This document shows, one piece after another, positions 553 through 59,343 of a stretch of DNA of 64,000 nucleotides (its first letter is position 1; each line of letters opens with the position of its first letter). The position numbers and the translations under genes are program-made. Source of the stretch: Mustelus asterias (lineage: Eukaryota). The stretch spans positions 1 through 64,000 of the forward strand of contig NW_027590433.1 in assembly GCF_964213995.1 (NCBI RefSeq). The letters run 5' to 3'. Under the pieces are notes generated by a model. The model did no database searches, was not told the DNA's origin, and was given only the letters and a program-made list of their open reading frames with translations.

Positions 553-872
553 ATTCCAGCTCAGCTGTGTCACCAAGTTCCCTTCTACAAACCTCTGCTG
601 CCGGTGACCGGTTATTTGAAGCTGCGAATATTCAGGTCTCTGTCAGTACACAGTACACGTACCCTCAGACCCCAGGACAGGCTCAGAAATACCTGCTTCA
701 GACACACATTTCTGGAGAGGAGAATAAATCAAACAGTGTCGCGGGGAGGATTTCTGCTTCTATCGATTCTTCCGTCAAAATCAGCCGGTTAAAGATCTCC
801 AAACTTTAACTGAGCGACTCCGCTGTTTATTACTGTGAACTGAGTTGGCGCACCGGGGATATACGGTGGAGC
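553..872 (+). pseudogene. TCR V-delta pseudogene, NAR-TCR supporting-V type, with a D-like 3' extension and 23-RSS (873-911)
   Basis: Acceptor CTGCAG ends at 552. Reconstructed across two small deletions: DSSSAVSPSSLLQTSAAGD/VI*SCEYSGLCQYTVH/YPQTPGQAQKYLLQTHISGEENKSNSVAGRISASIDSSVKISRLKISKL*LSDSAVYYC. Extra Cys in CDR1. RSS: CACAGTA (873-879), 23-nt spacer, ACAATAACC (903-911). Confidence 0.85.
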
Positions 873-1121
873 CACAGTAGCTGAATCTCCCTTAACGCCC
901 GTACAATAACCTCCCAGCCTCACAGGAGTGCACCAACCTCTCTCAATAGCACCCCTCTCAGCCCACTCCCAGCCGCTGACCCCCATCCCCACCGTGATGT
1001 TGACCGAGTTTATCATATTACTGGTCTGACCCAACCCTAATCAAATCAGTCGGACACACGACAGAGAGAAAGGGTGGTGAACGGGACCGCAATAGATCTT
1101 CTTATTGGATCAAACCCTGTG

Positions 1122-1181
1122 CAACATATGAAAAGGCTAAGCTCATCTTTGGCAACGGGACCAGGCTGATTGTGGAACCCA
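1122..1181 (+). CDS. TCR J segment J1, coding intact: TYEKAKLIFGNGTRLIVEP
   Basis: FGxG motif; donor GTAAGT at 1182; heptamer CCCTGTG (1115-1121), 12-nt spacer, weak nonamer AGATCTTCT. Confidence 0.9.
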
Positions 1182-22238: not shown

Positions 22239-22440
22239 AAGAGAGGCGTCACTCCTCAGCCTTCTCTGTGCCAAGCGAAAAAGCCCTAATTATCCAGTCT
22301 CAGCATTCGGTAAATTAATGGAGAAAATCACATAGGGTTAAGACATAGAAAAAATGCGGGTCTAATCGAATGGCTCAGCAGGTTGGAGGAGGTCACTCTG
22401 TTGGATTCTGATTATTTCCTTTTATTTATTAAATTTTCAG

Positions 22441-22752
22441 AGGCGAAAGGCCCGGTAGAACCAAAATTGAGCGTCTTTTACCCGCCAGTGCCACGGGGAG
22501 CCACCGGCACCGACACAGCTGCAGTATGCTTGGCCTCGGACTTCTCGCCCAACGCAATCCAGCTCTCCCTGTACACGGGATCCGGCCAGGAGGCCAATGT
22601 GACAAGATCCAGTGTCCTATTGGAGAGCGGGAATTACAGGAGCTCGGGTTTTCTCTCTTTCCCCCAATCCGAGGAATCGCCAAACATCACGTGCAAGGCA
22701 TTTCACGATAATCGAAATTACTCAGTAAACATCCCGCCCACAGCTGAAATTG
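22441..22752 (+). CDS. TRDC: TCR delta constant region, exon 1 (C1-set Ig domain)
   Basis: Acceptor TTTTCAG at 22440 and donor GTAAGT at 22753, phase 1/1 compatible with the J donors. AKGPVEPKLSVFYPP...TAAVCLASDFSP...NVTRSSVLLESGNYRSSGFLSFP...NITCKAFH has both Ig cysteines and matches my recollection of skate/shark C-delta rather than C-alpha. Confidence 0.9.
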
Positions 22753-23199
22753 GTAAGTTTATTTTATTTTCGTTCACGTGATGTGGGTGTCCTTGGCTTG
22801 GCCAACATTTATTGCCCGTCCTAAATTGCCCTTCAGCAGAGGACATTTAAGAGTCACTTGCCGGCCAGACCATGTAAGGACGGCAGATTTCGTTCGCTAA
22901 AGGAAGTTAGTGAACCAGATGAGTTTTAATGATAATCGACAATGGTTTCAGGGTCATCATGAAACTTTTAATTCCAATTTTTAAAAAAATGTTCAAATTT
23001 CGCAGCTGCCATCCCCAGGTCAGCATTCTGGGTCGTTGGATTACCAGTCCAGTGACAATGCCACTGCGCCACTGCGTCCTCTCAGAATGTTTTATGACAG
23101 GAAGAACTTGCTCTAAATATTATCCATCCTCTTAACGACCTAAGGACTCTCGGTGTCATCGTCACTCAAAGTGTAGTCTTTTTGAAAGGTTAGCTGACT

Positions 23200-24990
23200 A
23201 ATGATTGACGGTCAATTATCCTAGTCTGGGGACTTCACTGCAGGAGTTCCTCAGTGTGTCAGGCCTAACCAGCTTCAGTTGCTTCATCAATCACCTTCAA
23301 TCCATTATAAGGTCAGAAGTTGGGATGTTCGCTGATGACTGAACAATTTTCAGCACCATTCGTGACACCTCAGATCTTGAAGTAGTGCATTACAAATGCA
23401 GCAATAGCTGGACAATACCTAGGCTTTGACTGACAAGCTACAAGTAACATTTGCGCCACACATGTTCCAGGCAATGACCAACTCCAACAGGAAAGAAGCT
23501 AACAACCGGCTCTTGACATTTAATGGCATTACCATGACTGAAACAAAGAACAAAGAAAATTACAGCACAGGAACAGGCCCTTCGGCCCTCCAAGCCTGCA
23601 CCGACTATGCTGCCCGACTTAACTAAAACCCCTTTCCCTTCCGGGGACCATATCGCTCTATTCCCATCTTATTCATGTATTTGTCCAGATGTCCCTTAAA
23701 ACTCACTATCGTATCTCCTTCCACTACCTCCCCCGGCAACGAGTTCCAGACACCCACCACCTTCTGTGTAAAAACTCTGCCTCGTACGTCTCCTTTAAAC
23801 CTTGCCCCTCGCACCTTAAACCTATGCCCCCGAGTAATTGACTCTTCCACCCTGGGAAAAAGCTTCTAACTATCCACTCTGTCCATGCCTCTCATAATCC
23901 TGTAGACTTCTATCAGGTCAACCCCCACTATCAACATCCTGAGGGTTAACGTTGCTCAGAAACTGGACTGGACTATCCATATAAGTGCTGTAGCTGCAAG
24001 AGAATGTCGGAGGTTGGGAATCCTGTGGTGAGTAACGTATCTCCTCATCCCCCAAATCCTCTGCCCCATCCACAAGACATAATCATGACTGTGGTAGTGT
24101 ATTCGCCACTTGCCTCGATGAATGCAGCTCCAACAACACTCAGACATTTGACACGACCCAGGACAAAGCAGCTCCGCTTGATTAACAGTGTGTTTATGAG
24201 TGTCACAAGTCGGCTTACATTAAAACTTCAATGAATTTATTGTGACAATCCCATAGTCGCCACACTCTGTGCCTGTTCGGGTTACACTGAGGGAGAATTT
24301 AGCATGGCCAATGCATCTAATCAGCACGTCTTTCGGACTGTGGGAGGAAACCGGAGCGCCCGGATCAAACCCACGCTGACACGAGGAAAACGTGCAGACT
24401 CTGCACAGACAGTCACCCAAGCTGGGAATCGAACACAGGTCCCTGACACTGTGGGCGGGGGGGAGTGGCGGGGGGGGGGGGGGGCGGAGGGGAGTGGCGG
24501 GGCGTTGGGGGGGGGGTGGCGGTGCAGCAGTACTAACCACTGTGCCACTGTGCGGCTCAAGCATTAAGTACTCTATTCACAAACATCCACTTCTTCCACC
24601 ACCGAAGCACAATGGCAGCAGTGTGTGCCATCCACAAGATACACAGCAGTAACTCTCCAAGTCTCCTTCCGCTGAATCTTCCAAACTCACGACCGTTATC
24701 ATCTCGGAGGACAAGGGCAGCAGATACCTGGGAACACCATCATCTGGACGTTACCCTCCATGTCACTCAGCATCCTGACTTGGAAATGTTTCGGCAGTTC
24801 CTTCACTGTCGCAGAGTCAAAATGGTGGAACTTCTTCCCTAACAGCACTGTGTGTGTACGTACCCCTGACAGACTGCAGAGGTTCAAGCAGGAGACTCAC
24901 AACCATCTTCTGAAGGGGGCAATTAGGGATTGGCAATAAATGCTGACCTGCCAGTGATGTCCACATTCCGTAAATGAATAAAAATAATAA
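23200..24990. mobile_element. Old LINE (+) with a nested CR1 3' fragment (23541-23920, -) and a SINE (24220-24556, -)
   Basis: MFADD-like RT remnant near 23326; TRGHRFKV ORF 23623-23850; SINE body on the minus strand. Confidence 0.75.
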
Positions 24991-25472
24991 GAGCTAACTA
25001 TTATAATTCAGGGCAGTGTGCAGGACCCGTAACTGCTGGTACATCACCGAATTTAGGAACGTATTAAATACTAACCAGGGTACTGGAGAATCCCGTTCCT
25101 CTGGAGAAATGCCCTGATATCATTTAATCCACTGCAGAGCTGAAATCAGGCCTCGGTTTCACGACGTTTTCGGAAGACAGTGAAATACTGCACTGATGGA
25201 ACGGCTCTGGATCCTGGGTTTTAATCCCTGATGGGGAATCTACCCTGCACTCTTTGAACTCAGAATTGGGACGAACTAAATGGCAGAGCTACCAATGTTT
25301 CTCCGTTGTGAATAATCAAGTGAACAAGTCCAATCGTGCTGTTTGATTCTTACTTTCTTCGTGGCTTTTGGTTATGACAACAACATTATTCAAAGTGATA
25401 TTGAGAACAAACATGGTTACAGTAATGTCACTTGCTCACTTAATAAGTCAAATGTCATTTTTGCCCTTCCAG

Positions 25473-25535
25473 ATAAACCTAAATGCCCTACAGGTCGAAG
25501 TGATTCCTTGACAGAATCAAGTGACACGGAAAACG
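25473..25535 (+). CDS. TRDC: TCR delta constant region, exon 2 (connecting peptide DKPKCPTGRSDSLTESSDTEN)
   Basis: Acceptor CCTTCCAG at 25472, donor GTATGT at 25536, 63 nt, phase 1/1, one Cys for the interchain disulfide. Confidence 0.85.
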
Positions 25536-25977
25536 GTATGTGCTTTATTCAACATTTATCAAAGTAAAATACTTGCAAATAGACGGATTGATAAGTGGAC
25601 AAATAGGCACGGATACAGACCCGGAGATTGAATGATAAACATATAGTGAGATGGGGAAAAAGATAGATTGTCACACAGAGTGAGGGAGAGAGATATATCA
25701 ATCGAGTGGGATAGCGAGAGAGGAGGAGAGGCGGGGAGAGAGAGAGAAACTCAGAGTGAAAGAGAGATGAAGATAGATAAACAGGCAAGCAGACGGTCGG
25801 ACGGACGGACTGACAGAGATGGACAGACGGACGGACGGACAGGGATGGACAGACGGACGAAAGTCAAGCTGTTAGATAATGGAAAAAATATCACATTAGA
25901 GGTATACAGTTGTTTTTCAATACCAAATCATATATCCATTAAACCAGATCTATCATTTGTTTCTCTTATTTTGGCAG

Positions 25978-26088
25978 ATCGACTGAGGGTGAACTTTTTG
26001 TCTTTGACGGTGATGGGGCTAAGAATTTTGTTTTTCAAGAGCATTGTCTTCAATGTCATGATGACGGCCAGGGTGTGGCTATTTTGAG
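25978..26088 (+). CDS. TRDC: TCR delta constant region, exon 3 (transmembrane and tail DRLRVNFLSLTVMGLRILFFKSIVFNVMMTARVWLF*)
   Basis: Acceptor TTGGCAG at 25977; alpha/delta-type TM with R and K (GLRILFFKS); TGA 26085-26087 followed by donor GTAAGG at 26089, implying an untranslated exon 4. Confidence 0.93.
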
Positions 26089-48332: not shown

Positions 48333-49384
48333 AAGAGGACAGAGGGTAGCGGTAGAGGGGTGATTTTCTGACTGGAAGACTGTGACTAGCCATGATCCAC
48401 AGGGATCAGTTCCGGAACCTTTGCTGTTCGTAGTATATGTAAATGATTTGGAGGAAAATGTAGCTGGTATAATTGTAAGTTCACGGACGACACAAAAATT
48501 TGTGGAGTTGCGCAGAGTGAAGAGGATTGTCAGAGGATACAGCGACAGCAAAAGATAAACCGGTTGGAGACTGGGGCGGAAAAATGACAGATGGAGTTTA
48601 ATCTGGACAAGTGTGAGATAATGCATTTTGGAAGGTCCAATGCATGTCGGGATTATATCGGAAAGGTAGAACCCTTAGGCGTATTGATAAGCAGAGAGAT
48701 CTCGACGTACATATCCACCGATCACTGATAACATCAAGGACAGTGGCTGAATGACAGACTCTCCAAGGTTCAAACCCGAAAAAAAAGAAATAAGACGGTA
48801 GTGGGTTTAAATTTGTGATTCAAACCATGCTTGCGAACAGAGAGAAAATGTGCGACATGTTTTGTCCACAATTCCCAGTCTGGTGAGGTGACTGCGAGTA
48901 AATGGAAGAACACTGAACTGGGATATAATTAATGTCCTTATCGGGGCAAGGTGTCCTTTGGTGATATTCACATCAGAAGAAAATCCTGATCTAGTTATGG
49001 TAAGGCAGAGATTCTGGTCCGTAAAAGGTGTCAGGAAACAACAAAGCTCGAAAATTACGCCCGAAATGACAGTGGCATTGTGGGGAAATTCAGTAATATT
49101 CGCAAAAAAGCATTCTGATCACACACTCGCTGTGTACCGACTGTGATCAAATGGACCGAGAAACGGAAAGGGGAGATGGGAAAGGGCTGGCCAATAATTG
49201 ATACAGACTAGGAAATAACACCAAAGACAAAATGTCAGCTGACGCACCACTAACTCACTTTGGTGAGTGCCTTCGCTCGGAATTATAATACATTTCTGTT
49301 ACTCTCACTGTTTTTCGGGTGAGCGCGCCCTCTGCTGATCACGAACTGGAACTATCAGTGCGGTGCTTTTGTCCGGGATCCGCT

Positions 49385-49648
49385 CTATCTCTGCAGCAGA
49401 AACACAAGGCGGTATCGGAGAGAAGCGTCCTGGTGACATTTGAGGAACAGTGTTCCTTTGTACAAAGTAGGCAATATTTTTCCACATCCTCCGGGCTATA
49501 AATCCTCATTAAATATCTCGGAGTTTCGCTGGGATACAGGAACAGAGTAGGGAGAGTAGCTGTCGAGTATTTACAATCCAGCATTATGCTCTGTGTTTGG
49601 AGAACGCTTAATTCAGATTGATCATTGGACACAGAATCATCACTATTT
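49385..49648 (-). pseudogene. Inverted TCR V alpha/delta pseudogene with internal deletions
   Basis: Acceptor TTGCAG; NSDDSVSNDQSELSVLQTQSIMLDCKYS...LFLYPSETPRYLMRI...LLSDTALCFC; Trp and part of FR3 missing; nonamer ACAAAAGCA (49372-49364) with heptamer lost. Confidence 0.8.
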
Positions 49649-50712
49649 CTGCAACAAAACACAGAATGTATCAAATATCTGCGAGTGAAAATAACACTTG
49701 GAACAAATATTCCCCATTTTTTAGTTCGTATATGTCTGTTTTGCTGCAGCTGTTTCTCTGATTGTATCTTCCTCTAAATCTATTCCTCATTCATTCATTT
49801 ATATCACCGGTTCTTGCTCTGCTTAACTCCAGGTCTCGCCTCCAATTCCAATTATTCAATCCCTCTTGTTTTCTTCCCATATCTCCACCTACATTTCTCC
49901 CTTGTCTCTCCCTTACAGGTTTCAATAACAGATATCCCGCATAATGGACCATCAGCTGGTGCTCAGGTCCATCGTAATATTTTGATACTTTGAAAAAATT
50001 CCAGTAGTCATTTTACATTCCACTCCATGGAAGTACTCCAGAATGTGATGCATGTTGCTGTTATTAGGAGTGAGATTAATCAACAACTTGCAGCCAATGC
50101 ACATAGTACAAATCATGTATATCCAACGCCCAACATATCGACAGACATATCAAACACTCCCGCATTAATATCAAATATTAATTTCCACACCAAATGCCGT
50201 TATTAGTCATTTCCTTGGATATAATGAAACACAGGAGGAATTGCAACCGACAGGAATGTTCTCGGTGCCAATATGAAATAATGCATGTCTATGTGTACAT
50301 ATGATAGGGGAGATCTGAAATAAAAACAGAAAATTGCTGGAAAGACTCTGTGGAGAGAGAAACTGAGCTAAACATTTGCGACTTTGAAACTCCGAGTTGG
50401 CTGAGCAAAGGAGATAATTCTGCCTTTTACTGTCAAGGATATATGAAAATTCTGTCCCAAGGCAACTAATCGAAAACCATACATCAGTGTTGCATTTCTA
50501 CTTTGTCTTCGGTGACGATATGAAAGATATTTACCATGGAAGTAATATATATGATTACGTATTCCATTAAACCTCCATTGACGTAATTCTCCTTTAATAT
50601 TCTGGATCGAGAGAATGCCGAAACCAGGAAACGGCAATTAGTGGAATTGCAGCTTCCCGTTTTGATTTTAAGTGAGCAATTTTTGAAGGAGAGTGTTGAC
50701 CATAAAAAACAA

Positions 50713-55129: not shown

Positions 55130-56186
55130 ATGCGGCTCCCCGTTTTCACTCTGATCTGGGTGACATTCATTGTTGGTAAGGTTAACACTTTAAAAATGAG
55201 TTATTTTCTGGAGGAATAAAGTTGAAAAGCAGGACATTCGTGTTATACAGGTATTGGACATGCCGTAGAACACAAATGAATTCCTGCGAGTGGTTTTAGT
55301 CTTTTGAAAATAGATTTGAAAAGCACACTGAAAAGGCGATTTCGAGAAATGGTACTCGGATTGGGAGGTGAGAGCTATCAGAATGCAAGATTATGATTAC
55401 TTTCTCGACTGACCAAAGAAACTAACGCAAACCTGACTGATCTATTTATAATGATAACGAGGATTGGTGTGGTGGACGGGGAGAGGATGATTCCACTTGT
55501 GGGAGAATTCCAAATATATGTCCCACAATTCCAATGAAACAAAGAGATCAACTGGGAATCGGAGAGAAACAGCTTTAGAAAGAGTTGGATAGAATGTGAC
55601 TCATGTTAACACAATGAACACTTGAGGAGAGGAGCAAAGACTAATTTAAAGGTAAACTAAACTAAACAGCTGAGGAAGAAAGGGACAACTGCATTGAGAA
55701 GAGGCGAGAGGGAGAAATCTCCAGGGGATTGTAAACGGGAACATAGATCAGTTGGAGAGAATGTGGTATGATTCAATACATTCAATACATATTTTTACGT
55801 TACACTGTCAGTGAATTTTCTCCCTTAGTTCAATTGAACTTTTAATCAATGTTTTCTTCCTTTCTTTAACCGTGTGTTTCAGATCTGAGCGATGGAGATT
55901 CTGTTACTCAGCGGGAATCCTCACTCACACGGACAGAGGGAGAAGATGTCACTTTAAACTGCACCTTTACCGACGATGCTTATTATTTATTTTGGTATCG
56001 TCAATACCCAGGCAGACAGCCCGAGTTTGTAGTCCGGAGAGACAAGAACGGCGGTTTTGAATTAAAGGCGGATTTCGCTCGGACCCGGTTTTCTGATTCA
56101 GTCCAGCAGTCAGACAATTTGTACCGAGTGACTATTTCGGAGTTGCGGCTGTCTGACACTGCGGTCTATTACTGTGCACAGAGACT
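55130..56186 (+). CDS. Intact TCR V alpha/delta gene (leader 55130-55175; V exon 55883-56186; 23-RSS 56187-56225)
   Basis: Leader MRLPVFTLIWVTFIV with donor GTAAGG. V: DLSDGDSVTQRESSLTRTEGEDVTLNCTFTDDAYYLFWYRQYPGRQPEFVVRRDKNGGFELKADFARTRFSDSVQQSDNLYRVTISELRLSDTAVYYCAQR. RSS CACAGTG, 23 nt, ACAAAAACT. Confidence 0.95.
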
Positions 56187-57628
56187 CACAGTGATGAGAA
56201 CGAGTGAAATCCTCGTACAAAAACTGCCGCAGGTTTCTGAGTCACAGCTGCTGTCTGTCGAGTGCTGTTTCTAACAGAGGGTTATACACTAACGCGTCAA
56301 TACATTCCTGTGAACGCAAACCAGACCACAATTCACACAAACATCATCTAAAATCGTTCACAGATTCTGTCTGATTATTACATTCACTGTGCAAGGGAAG
56401 AATTAGCTGTTGTTTATTTGGAATCACCGGGAAATCGGCACGAACATTGAGAATTCAAAATGCTGCAGGTAGCCTTGAACTAGTTGTACCCTTGTTCTGA
56501 TGTTTCAAAGAACACTCGGGGCAAAGAAACCAATACTGTTCGGTTTGATATGTCAGTCAATAGTGTAAACTGATGCCCGCCTGCTGAGGCAAATCCTCAT
56601 AATCACAACAGCCTGATTAAACATCTCTCAATGTTACAGTAATGAAATAAAAATATCAACTGGGAATCGAAGAGAAACTTCATTGGAAAGAGTTCGGAAG
56701 AATGTGACTCATATTAACACAATGAACACTTGACACATATTAAAACTAAGAATTCTTAACAGTAAAGGTACAAAAGTTTATTTCAATACATGCTTAGAAT
56801 CCAATGAACAATGATTAATATCTCTATTAATAATCTCTAAGAACAGGTTTGGTGTACTCTAGAGACTGGAACATTTGGTAAGAAAATCGACTGAATGCAA
56901 AAATCTAATTGAGAAGAGCGTCAGAAAGTTCCTGAAGGACAACTAGGGATGGGCAATAAATAGCGGCCGAGCCCGCGATGCCCACATGCCCGAAAGTCTT
57001 TCTTTAAAAGTCTGCTGTAATCACCAGAAGTGCTATGGGAAATCGAATCCGCGGGATAAGTCTTTATGCTCAGACAAATATTTTGTTGGGATATGGGCCA
57101 AATGCGGGCAATTGGGACTTGCATAGTGGTTAGAAAAGGGTAGCATGGACAAGTTGGGCAGAAGGGTCTGTTTCCATGCTGTAAACCTCTATGACTCTGT
57201 GACTACTTCCATATCCGTTATTTCCCTGAATATCCACAAATCTATCAACTGCCTTCAAGAAATCAAACGACTGTACAATCATTGCTCTCTTTGACACATA
57301 GAGTGCATTAAAGCGAATGTATGGTTTTTGACTGAGATGATTTTTGAGATATGACTCTGATGAGTTTTATTTCATGTTGTAATAACAGCACCAGAGTCTC
57401 CTATTCAGAGTTGCTCGTAAACGACAGAAACTACTATAAAGAGGGATTTTACATACACTGACAGACATTCAGCACAAAGAACCTGATCATTCGGTTTAAT
57501 TGGTTTTAATGAGATGATTTTGTTTCTATTAACTGTTCACAATCCAGCTCAGAGATCGGATTCAGTGAGAGGAGGTGAGAATGCCTTTGCTGGTTTTTGT
57601 ACGGACTAACTGCGTCTCTGTAACTGCG

Positions 57629-58068
57629 GTTCAGCGCACACTGTTACAGATACACGGCAGAGTCAGAGACACGGACCCCGGTGATATTTAATGAAGCTGT
57701 TTTCTTGTCTCTGTCCAAATTAGCAGAAAACTGGTCCGAAAAATCAGGAGACTTATCCCCCTTCCCCTGGCCGTAACTTTTCAATAAATATCTCGGAGCT
57801 TCTCCGGGATACAGGATGTACCAGAATAGAGTTTGGTCAACGTACTTATCTTTATAACTGCAGTTCAAAATTACCGTCTGTACTTCCTGAACCGTTAATT
57901 CAGGCGGCTCCTGGGAAACTGAAGTTTGGCCATTGGTTCCTGTAACAACATATAGACTGTGTGAGAAATCTGTGAGTGAATATAACCCATTGAACACACA
58001 CTGAGGATTTGAGCTCAGACTCACGGGGCAGCATGTCCATTATTATCAGTAGAACACGCAGGGAACAT
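57629..58068 (-). pseudogene. Inverted TCR V alpha/delta pseudogene (leader 58068-58025; V exon 57939-57629)
   Basis: QTSVSQEPPELTVQEVQTVILNCSY...FWYILYPGEAPRYLL...VSDSAVYL*QCAL; stop before the second Cys; frameshifted leader; RSS CGCAGTT, 21 nt, ACAAAAACC; CRE TGACGTCA at 58223-58230. Confidence 0.9.
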
Positions 58069-59033
58069 GTGGTTCCTGAATGGACAGTAAACAGCGACAC
58101 TGTTTAAAATATGTTGTTGCTTCTAGTCTTATATCACGGAGTAAACTCAGATCAGAGGCAGCTTCAATCATTGGCAAATTGGGGGGTTTTCCCAGTGTTG
58201 CAATTGGCTGGTCGCCTTGAGATGACGTCAGCTGTGGACCAAACACTGCTAGTGGTGGACTAAACACAGCTGGCTCCCTCCAAACACATTCCATCCCGGG
58301 CTGTGTGTGTTTTTCTCACTCTCTTTCTCTCTCCATGAAAGGTGAATAACGTTATCAGTTACACTGTCTCTTTCTCGGTTAACCCTCTTTCGTTCGAACT
58401 CAATATCCCCCTTTTTATAGATAGATTTTTCTTTCTAAATAAAGTTAAAAATGAAATAAATAATTTACCCTCATTTACTCTGTAGGTATTAATGAGTGCA
58501 TCCACTGCATGAACATAATAGTAGTTACTGCTTTATTTATACCGGGGATAAGTAATCACCCAAGTCCACATTGACTTGCGTTTCCACTGGAATTACTCTT
58601 ATACTGGGAAAGTACTGATTCAATCAGTCATTATTTCTGTCCAGAAACTTCAAAATGTGACAAGTCTCAGTGTGCCTTTAATATTGGATCACATTTAACA
58701 GGTTCCCCTGACAGATAGGCATCTGATACAGAAAGATTGGAAGTACTGATTTATTAAGTTATTCACTCGGGACATCTGTGGGTTTTGTGATTGGGATCAG
58801 GAAATGATTGGATTTATCCAGGAATAATCTGAGCGCCAAATGTCACATTTCCCCAACAGTGACAATCACTGACGTTAGGGAGGGAAAGCCACTCAGCTGG
58901 GGCAGCATTGTCAGGTTCATCATCTGTACATTTTCTCTGAAATTCAATGCAATGTGTTTTGCGGACAAGGAACCATTGATTGAGGACCTGCGCCAGTTTT
59001 TGTACGAAGCCCGCGGGATCCTCATTCAGTGTG

Positions 59034-59343
59034 GGTCTCAGTGCACAGTAATACACGGCGTTATCTGTCATCTTCAAATCTTTCATGGACAAGTGAAAAG
59101 TGTTTTGTGTCTCGCTGAGATTCCAGCTGAAATGTTTAAAGCCGGGAGCCGTATCGGTAAATCCATAACTCTCGGCTCTGAGCAGATACTGAGGAGCTCG
59201 GTGTGGATACTGGCGATACCAGAACAGGACATAGACTGTCGGTAAACCCTATACAGAGTAACTGCAGGGTATTGCTGAATCTTCACCCTCTGCTGCTTCA
59301 ACTCTTGGTTCTGACTGGGACACTGAGTCGCCGTTACTCATCT
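59034..59343 (-). pseudogene. Inverted TCR V alpha/delta pseudogene with one CDR1 stop and a good 23-RSS (59033-58995)
   Basis: DSVSQSEPRVEAAEGEDSAIPCSYSV*GLPTVYVLFWYRQYPHRAPQYLL...TDNAVYYCALR; CACACTG, 23 nt, ACAAAAACT; leader-like sequence near 59745-59798 appears out of phase. Confidence 0.92.

Follow-up and report, generated by a model that had tools for sequence, protein, structure and literature searches.

A decayed V segment fused to a D segment ahead of the J array of a shark T-cell receptor gene suggests past action of the lymphocyte recombinase in the germ line

The germline joining of gene segments is a classic oddity of shark immunoglobulin (Ig) clusters and provides the main genomic evidence for RAG in germ cells. 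We analyzed a stretch of 64,000 nucleotides (nt) from the shark Mustelus asterias (positions 1–64,000 of contig NW_027590433.1; hereafter the window), which opens with a candidate of this kind in a T-cell receptor (TCR) gene. A decayed variable (V) segment, related to the supporting V-delta genes of NAR-TCR, is pre-fused to a diversity (D) segment upstream of an array of joining (J) segments. This arrangement suggests that the lymphocyte recombinase once acted on a TCR gene in the germ line. The window contains no N and starts 552 nt upstream of the V exon.

Germline-joined Ig clusters of sharks and skates comprise VD, VDD, VDJ and VJ forms, and their joins are attributed to RAG activity in germ cells (PMC2193156, in excerpt). 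With these clusters the window element shares directly fused segments, the disappearance of the intervening recombination signal sequences (RSSs) and the existence of close split copies. Trimming, a possible P nucleotide and the lack of an N region are likewise common to both, and partly joined VD forms are known among the Ig clusters. The window gene differs in that it is a T-cell receptor gene (an NAR-TCR supporting V-delta), that the copy is a pseudogene and that its inheritance is putative.

The supporting V-delta of NAR-TCR has no leader and carries a cysteine in complementarity-determining region 1 (CDR1), according to PMC1845163. The window V shares with it a splice acceptor at its opening, the CDR1 cysteine and a strong likeness to the V that comes second in two-V gene models, and departs from it in its frameshifts, its stops and its fusion to a D; an NAR V partner, if any, would lie upstream of the window. 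An unjoined D-delta is flanked by a 12-RSS on its 5′ side and a 23-RSS on its 3′ side. A copy found in sequencing reads has exactly this layout, while the window retains the 3′ half and has the V in place of the 5′ 12-RSS.

A parallel outside the sharks is mammalian TCR-mu, which, like NAR-TCR, is a three-domain chain in which germline change has deprived the second, supporting V of junctional diversity (PMC3457774, in excerpt). In the account given there, the supporting V is a germline-joined exon in marsupials, and its D segments have been lost in platypus. TCR-mu is of independent origin, however, and the marsupial exon is a complete VDJ that is thought to be retrotransposed, whereas the window copy is dead, keeps its 23-RSS and has no J joined to its V and D. 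We found no description of a germline-joined TCR segment from cartilaginous fish in the literature searched, which did not include the primary NAR-TCR papers and their supplements, and an earlier report is possible.

The supporting V pseudogene and its D segment

Paralogues were compared on the basis of predicted proteins and the loose ends of contigs. Contigs from four of the 17 runs listed were aligned to positions 425–1490 at 90% likeness. Runs X1, X2 and X4, three samples from one study, contain 70–89% of the sampled window words. All statements on contigs cover the contigs listed, outside which there are 73 further records.

Despite its frameshifts, the V is 64% and 63% identical to the supporting V of the models P0008 and P0009, respectively, over 100 aligned residues, and among the models the P0059 type (SPSSLLQTSAAGD ... 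EMSWRT) comes closest. A splice acceptor AG (551–552) abuts the exon, and the resulting reading, TAD followed by SSS, agrees with the gene models. Called against paralogue contigs and gene models, the lesions are the loss of 1 nt after 608, a TGA at 617–619, the loss of 2 nt after 658, which removes W41, and a TAA at 806–808. The third frame reads SCEYSGLCQYTVH and holds C23 and the CDR1 cysteine (TGT 641–643), a stretch that is not in frame with the remainder of the exon. The open frame with C23, W41 and C104 of a functional V is therefore absent. Judged by its sequence, the V is an NAR-TCR supporting V-delta pseudogene with two frameshifts and two stops, in agreement with the initial annotation of the window, which had described it as decayed. 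Between the exon and the window start lies a SINE-like repeat (SINE, short interspersed nuclear element), and a distant leader or an NAR V farther upstream is possible. Copies of this tRNA-derived repeat were seen at 1–420, about 130 nt upstream of the V exon, and at 43.9–44.1 kilobases (kb).

Some contigs vary within the V. Those of X2, X4 and a second organism (organism B, run X5) have TG after 658, which would restore W41, while X1 reads as the window does. X2 and organism B have G at 737 and 742, where X1 is again like the window, and X1 has an extra T after 640. The variants at 658–659, 737 and 742 could be allelic differences of the pseudogene V or stem from a paralogue that is near-identical to it.

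The initial annotation had set the 36 nt between the conserved Cys codon and the heptamer against 11 nt in the V genes at 56.2 and 59.0 kb, and had read the extra letters as one or two D segments. The distance stands: the Cys codon occupies 834–836 and is followed by 36 nt (837–872) before the heptamer. The count of 11 nt is also right, but the two genes in question, at 56.2 kb (+) and at 59.0 kb (−), belong to another V family. Supporting V genes have ∼19–20 nt after the Cys, so that the true excess of the window tail is ∼17 nt.

The nature of the first part of the tail is apparent from annotated models of many shark species. We compared 59 proteins, 44 of which have the supporting-V motif before the Cys. 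Sixteen of the 44 stop exactly eight residues after the Cys (xLSxxxAQ-stop, which corresponds to the V end plus the heptamer), and 14 begin alike (xLSxxxAQ) and then read on. The other 14 comprise eight that are model-spliced to J or C, two that end in EMSWRTA, three odd cases and P0030, which is described below. Because 30 of the 44 models share the xLSxxxAQ tail and two more end in EMSWRTA, ELSWRT, and with it TTGGCGCAC, is assigned to the V. The D-D reading was accordingly rejected, and only a single D, with its own 3′ 23-RSS, is left in the tail. Several models from several shark orders (P0052, P0033, P0036, P0046, P0049, P0050 and the N-terminus of P0006) show repeated RSS-like translations past the supporting V (..TV..TERAVQKPE..), which would fit tandem 23-RSS arrays behind supporting V genes.

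Unjoined copies of both partners are present in reads of the same species. Five V contigs (two from X1, three from X2) match the window through 853 and then continue with AG, CACAGTG and a spacer that begins ACACAGAACACGG. Another V type matches through 845, followed by 10 nt of its own and a heptamer. The unjoined D is represented by one contig each in X1, X2 and X4, in which a nonamer (G)GTTTTTGT, truncated by the contig end, 12 nt and CACTGTG stand directly before 855. From there on these contigs read like the window, with no listed difference over 855–902. The spacer of the RSS at 873–911, which the initial annotation had singled out as a means of telling a D signal from a V signal, is that of the D copies, and those of the V copies differ. 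A long tail shared by unrearranged supporting V genes, which it had named as the finding that would speak against a join, was also looked for; the supporting V tails end at 853–855 and then enter their own heptamer.

Taken together, the unjoined V and unjoined D contigs identify 855–872 as one D, with its 5′ 12-RSS seen in the unjoined copies, and 873–911 as the 3′ 23-RSS of that D. The D normally sits a short distance upstream of J1. The V supplies 837–853, minus its terminal AG. The C at 854 is what a P nucleotide at the untrimmed 5′ end of the D would be (C before GGGG); a single N nucleotide would also account for it. A paralogous D, GGGATATCGTGGGA, is preceded by the same 12-RSS letters and located before 872; its 23-RSS is the same with three differences, and in X1 (record 6) this 23-RSS is followed by 97 other letters and then by J1. 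Over 941–1064, a variant with five differences occurs in contigs of X2 and X4. In organism B, a homologous unjoined V matches to 842 and then has RSS-like letters of its own; 932–1088 also has a homologue there. No contig of organism B covers 857–928, and hence there is no cross-species evidence on the joint.

An RSS scan of the whole window returned 46 rows, among which three are strong 23-spacer sites (score of at least 14/16), at 873, 56187 and 58995. Since all three lie directly 3′ of a V, the RSS at 873 is no chance match. Its heptamer CACAGTA (873–879), spacer (880–902) and nonamer ACAATAACC (903–911) are complete. In the same scan, no free D (12-RSS, short core, 23-RSS) was found in the window. 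A D-type 12-RSS motif, with up to three mismatches allowed, has two matches in the window, which is at chance level (10 of 100 shuffles give two or more).

Table 1. Features of the joined element, its J1 segment and the constant region in the window
Feature	Position	Strand	Basis
Supporting-V pseudogene exon	553–853	+	63–64% to models; V copies in reads match through 853
Single junctional C	854	+	V copies in reads depart from window after 853; unjoined D agrees with it from 855 on
D segment GGGGATATACGGTGGAGC, full length at 5′ end	855–872	+	12-RSS directly before 855 in X1, X2 and X4 contigs
3′ 23-RSS of the D: CACAGTA, 23-nt spacer, ACAATAACC	873–911	+	RSS scan; unjoined D copies run into same RSS
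D-to-J1 spacer, 182 nt	912–1093	+	Measured on window sequence
J1 12-RSS, weak: nonamer AGATCTTCT (5/9), 12-nt spacer, heptamer CCCTGTG	1094–1121	+	
J1 coding (..KLIFGNGTRLIVEP), splice donor GT 1182–1183	1122–1181	+	15/16 residues match P0058
C-domain exon, delta-type, served by the J array	22440–22757	+	103/106 residues match P0058
Further constant-region exons	25472–25561, 25977–26084		

The J1 nonamer is poor, and a variant contig of X2 has G at 1094 and 1101, nearer to the consensus. The stretch of the J1 12-RSS shows up translated in the gene models P0006 and P0010. P0010, from Scyliorhinus canicula, consists of an Ig-heavy-chain-like V, ∼66 nt and then a delta-type C; the ∼66 nt have the length expected if a 23-RSS were followed immediately by the 12-RSS of a J1-like segment.

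A second joined copy is found among the M. asterias models. XP_078061836.1 (P0030) ends in GLSRH-RYTVEPQ-stop, and window positions 857–880 translate as GYTVEPQ-stop. We read this model as the same D and D heptamer joined to an open supporting V, in a different frame and with a different junction. Up to the Cys, its near twin XP_078059704.1 (P0031) shares 219 of 222 residues with it; the supporting V is fully identical, yet the twin ends unjoined (GLSRH-IAQ-stop). Such a joined-split pair resembles the near-identical light-chain pairs of the nurse shark described in the excerpted PMC2193156.

Origin of the joint

We consider it likely that the element is a RAG-type V-to-D coding joint that arose in the germ line, in an NAR-TCR (TCR-delta) cluster, where RAG as the agent and the germline timing are what we infer. 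The V-D coding joint is real and probably germline, and, given that it is real, there is a strong expectation that it is inherited. In such an event, a supporting V-delta with its 23-RSS would have been joined to the J-proximal D, which has a 12-RSS on its 5′ side and a 23-RSS on its 3′ side. The V would have lost its last 2 nt, the D would have entered at full length with one C between them, and the RSS of the V, the 5′ RSS of the D and all intervening DNA would have been deleted. That a V-to-D join had removed the 5′ RSS of the D was already proposed in the initial annotation, and the 12-RSS directly before 855 in the unjoined contigs supports it. The distance it gave from the 23-RSS to the J1 12-RSS, ∼180 base pairs, is 182 nt when measured (912–1093). 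At this spacing, the hybrid VD, which retains the 3′ 23-RSS of the D, would be permitted by the 12/23 rule to join J1 in one step. With its two frameshifts and two stops, the VD element is now an inert relic whose products would be out of frame and stopped.

The form of the joint is that of a coding joint: the V lacks only its last AG, the D is untrimmed, one C stands between them and the breakpoints fall at the heptamer borders. As in germline-joined genes, the segments are fused at their coding ends, both intervening RSSs are absent and split relatives are present. The joint requires no N region, which favors a germline origin; germline joins of sharks show trimming and P nucleotides and little sign of TdT, in contrast to lymphocyte joints (Lee et al. 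2000, PMC2193156, in excerpt). The joined copy XP_078061836.1, annotated in the same species with a different junction, also speaks for the germ line.

Several points weigh against this assignment. Among the contigs listed, none bridges 837–858, and the junction is thus unconfirmed in any run, tissue or second individual. The X1 contig over 858–1189 is unbranched, with a depth of 12.2 compared to 8.7–13 for its single neighbours, even though the contig with the unjoined D runs into it. The unjoined D may accordingly represent the second allele at this locus (the join then being polymorphic), a duplicate of very recent origin or the true germline condition. Runs X1–X4 all come from one study, and their kind and tissue are not on record. 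If the window and the M. asterias models derive from one animal, the case of XP_078061836.1 is not independent as regards tissue. The depth sums are compatible with the joined and the unjoined readings alike.

In the best-surviving alternative, which we regard as improbable, a T-cell clone had joined V to D somatically and the assembler built this rearrangement into the contig, the unjoined V and D being the germline state. It would account for the unjoined D with identical letters from 855 on in X1, X2 and X4, for the single-copy depth of the shared downstream contig in X1 and for the lack of a bridging contig among those listed. V-to-D joins without D-to-J joins are, moreover, known intermediates at TCR-delta loci. 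Against it, lymphocyte joints are polyclonal, and a consensus assembly would rarely follow one lymphocyte clone. The junction also has no N region, and the annotated M. asterias genome contains another supporting V joined to a D, with a different junction.

A fusion formed without RAG, by unequal crossing-over, gene conversion or a misjoin between paralogous clusters, appears very improbable. The many near-identical paralogues do favor misassembly and exchange. However, the two RSSs are gone precisely at the coding borders, the V having lost 2 nt and the D being intact, which disfavors assembly error and homologous exchange. No sequence is shared at the joint, and an exchange or collapse within homology, for example between heptamers, would have retained one heptamer. 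Finally, the notion that there is no D, and that this V family merely has a long V-encoded 3′ tail, is hardly tenable: the supporting V tail is indeed longer (∼19–20 nt) than the 11 nt of the other V genes of the window, but it ends at 853–855 before its own heptamer, 855–872 is found elsewhere behind a 12-RSS, and the RSS spacer at 873–911 is that of the D copies rather than the V copies. We retain the RAG-type germline joint as the preferred explanation.

The NAR-TCR cluster and its other contents

The joined element stands ahead of eight J-like segments (FGxG plus splice donor; 1148, 3470, 5087, 5805, 7473, 8077, 14109 and 14957) and a constant (C) region. The C exon is 92–94% identical to predicted M. 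asterias proteins. A search with P0001 returned 12 proteins, which include, besides the query, six M. asterias C copies on six contigs with 84–97% identity. Four of these six (P0004, P0005, P0007 and P0009) are chains composed of an NAR V, a second V, J and C, which is the architecture of NAR-TCR (PMC1845163 and PMC12227049, both in excerpt). Because copies of the C occur in such two-V chains, it is identified as the delta-type C of NAR-TCR clusters. The label "alpha chain-like", assigned automatically by NCBI, was rejected, as the two-V models mark the C as that of NAR-TCR (delta).

The closest model is P0058 (XP_078060020.1), which matches the window in J1 (15/16 residues), two small exons at 2038–2118 (26/27) and 2492–2581 (30/30), the C domain (103/106) and the transmembrane exon (36/36). 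An NAR V was not found in the window: residues 1–124 of P0004 have no match, and the N-terminal V of P0005 has only a weak V-like match at 55.9 kb. At least seven distinct copies of the delta-type C of NAR-TCR are present on different M. asterias contigs (P0001–P0009, P0058 and the window at 22440–26084), several of them accompanied by an NAR V, a supporting V and a J of their own. From these sequences, NAR-TCR looks to be organized in clusters, each with a private C, unlike the single C behind a translocon.

Two exons of the cluster stand out. The J-like exon at 2492–2581 reads ..ICGGGTKLSVEP, with Cys for the Phe of FGXG, and is still used in the NCBI models P0001 and P0058. A short exon at 22246–22308, just 5′ of the C domain, agrees with P0004 and P0005 at 21/21 residues (EREASLLSLLCAKRKSPNYPV) and probably represents a gene-model artefact or an unusual extra exon. 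Ordinary alpha/delta-type V genes lie downstream of the C in both orientations, at 49342–49773 (−), 55883–56225 (+), 57647–58039 (−) and 58817–59248 (−). Of these, the V at 57.6–58.0 kb carries a stop immediately upstream of its Cys and lacks a good heptamer; the V at 49.3–49.8 kb is decayed.

Germline joining beyond the Ig clusters

A VD-joined supporting V would extend germline joining from the Ig clusters of sharks to the TCR-delta/NAR-TCR system. As the window copy is dead, its value lies in the evidence it gives of a process rather than in a working gene. It could be polymorphic, with joined and unjoined alleles, which would imply a recent event. If the D of the window was the only D of its cluster, V genes upstream could join the J segments only directly. 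Pairs of joined and split copies, some of them near-identical, could be used to date the joins and to test whether they still occur.

It is conceivable, though we put it forward only tentatively and with some doubt, that germline V-to-D joining of the NAR-TCR supporting V is recurrent in this shark lineage, with at least one joined copy (XP_078061836.1, an open two-V model) still in use. If so, this would be direct evidence of RAG acting on a TCR locus in shark germ cells. It would also point to selection fixing the third complementarity-determining region (CDR3) of a domain with a purely scaffolding role, a course convergent with that of the supporting V in mammalian TCR-mu, which is pre-joined or D-less.
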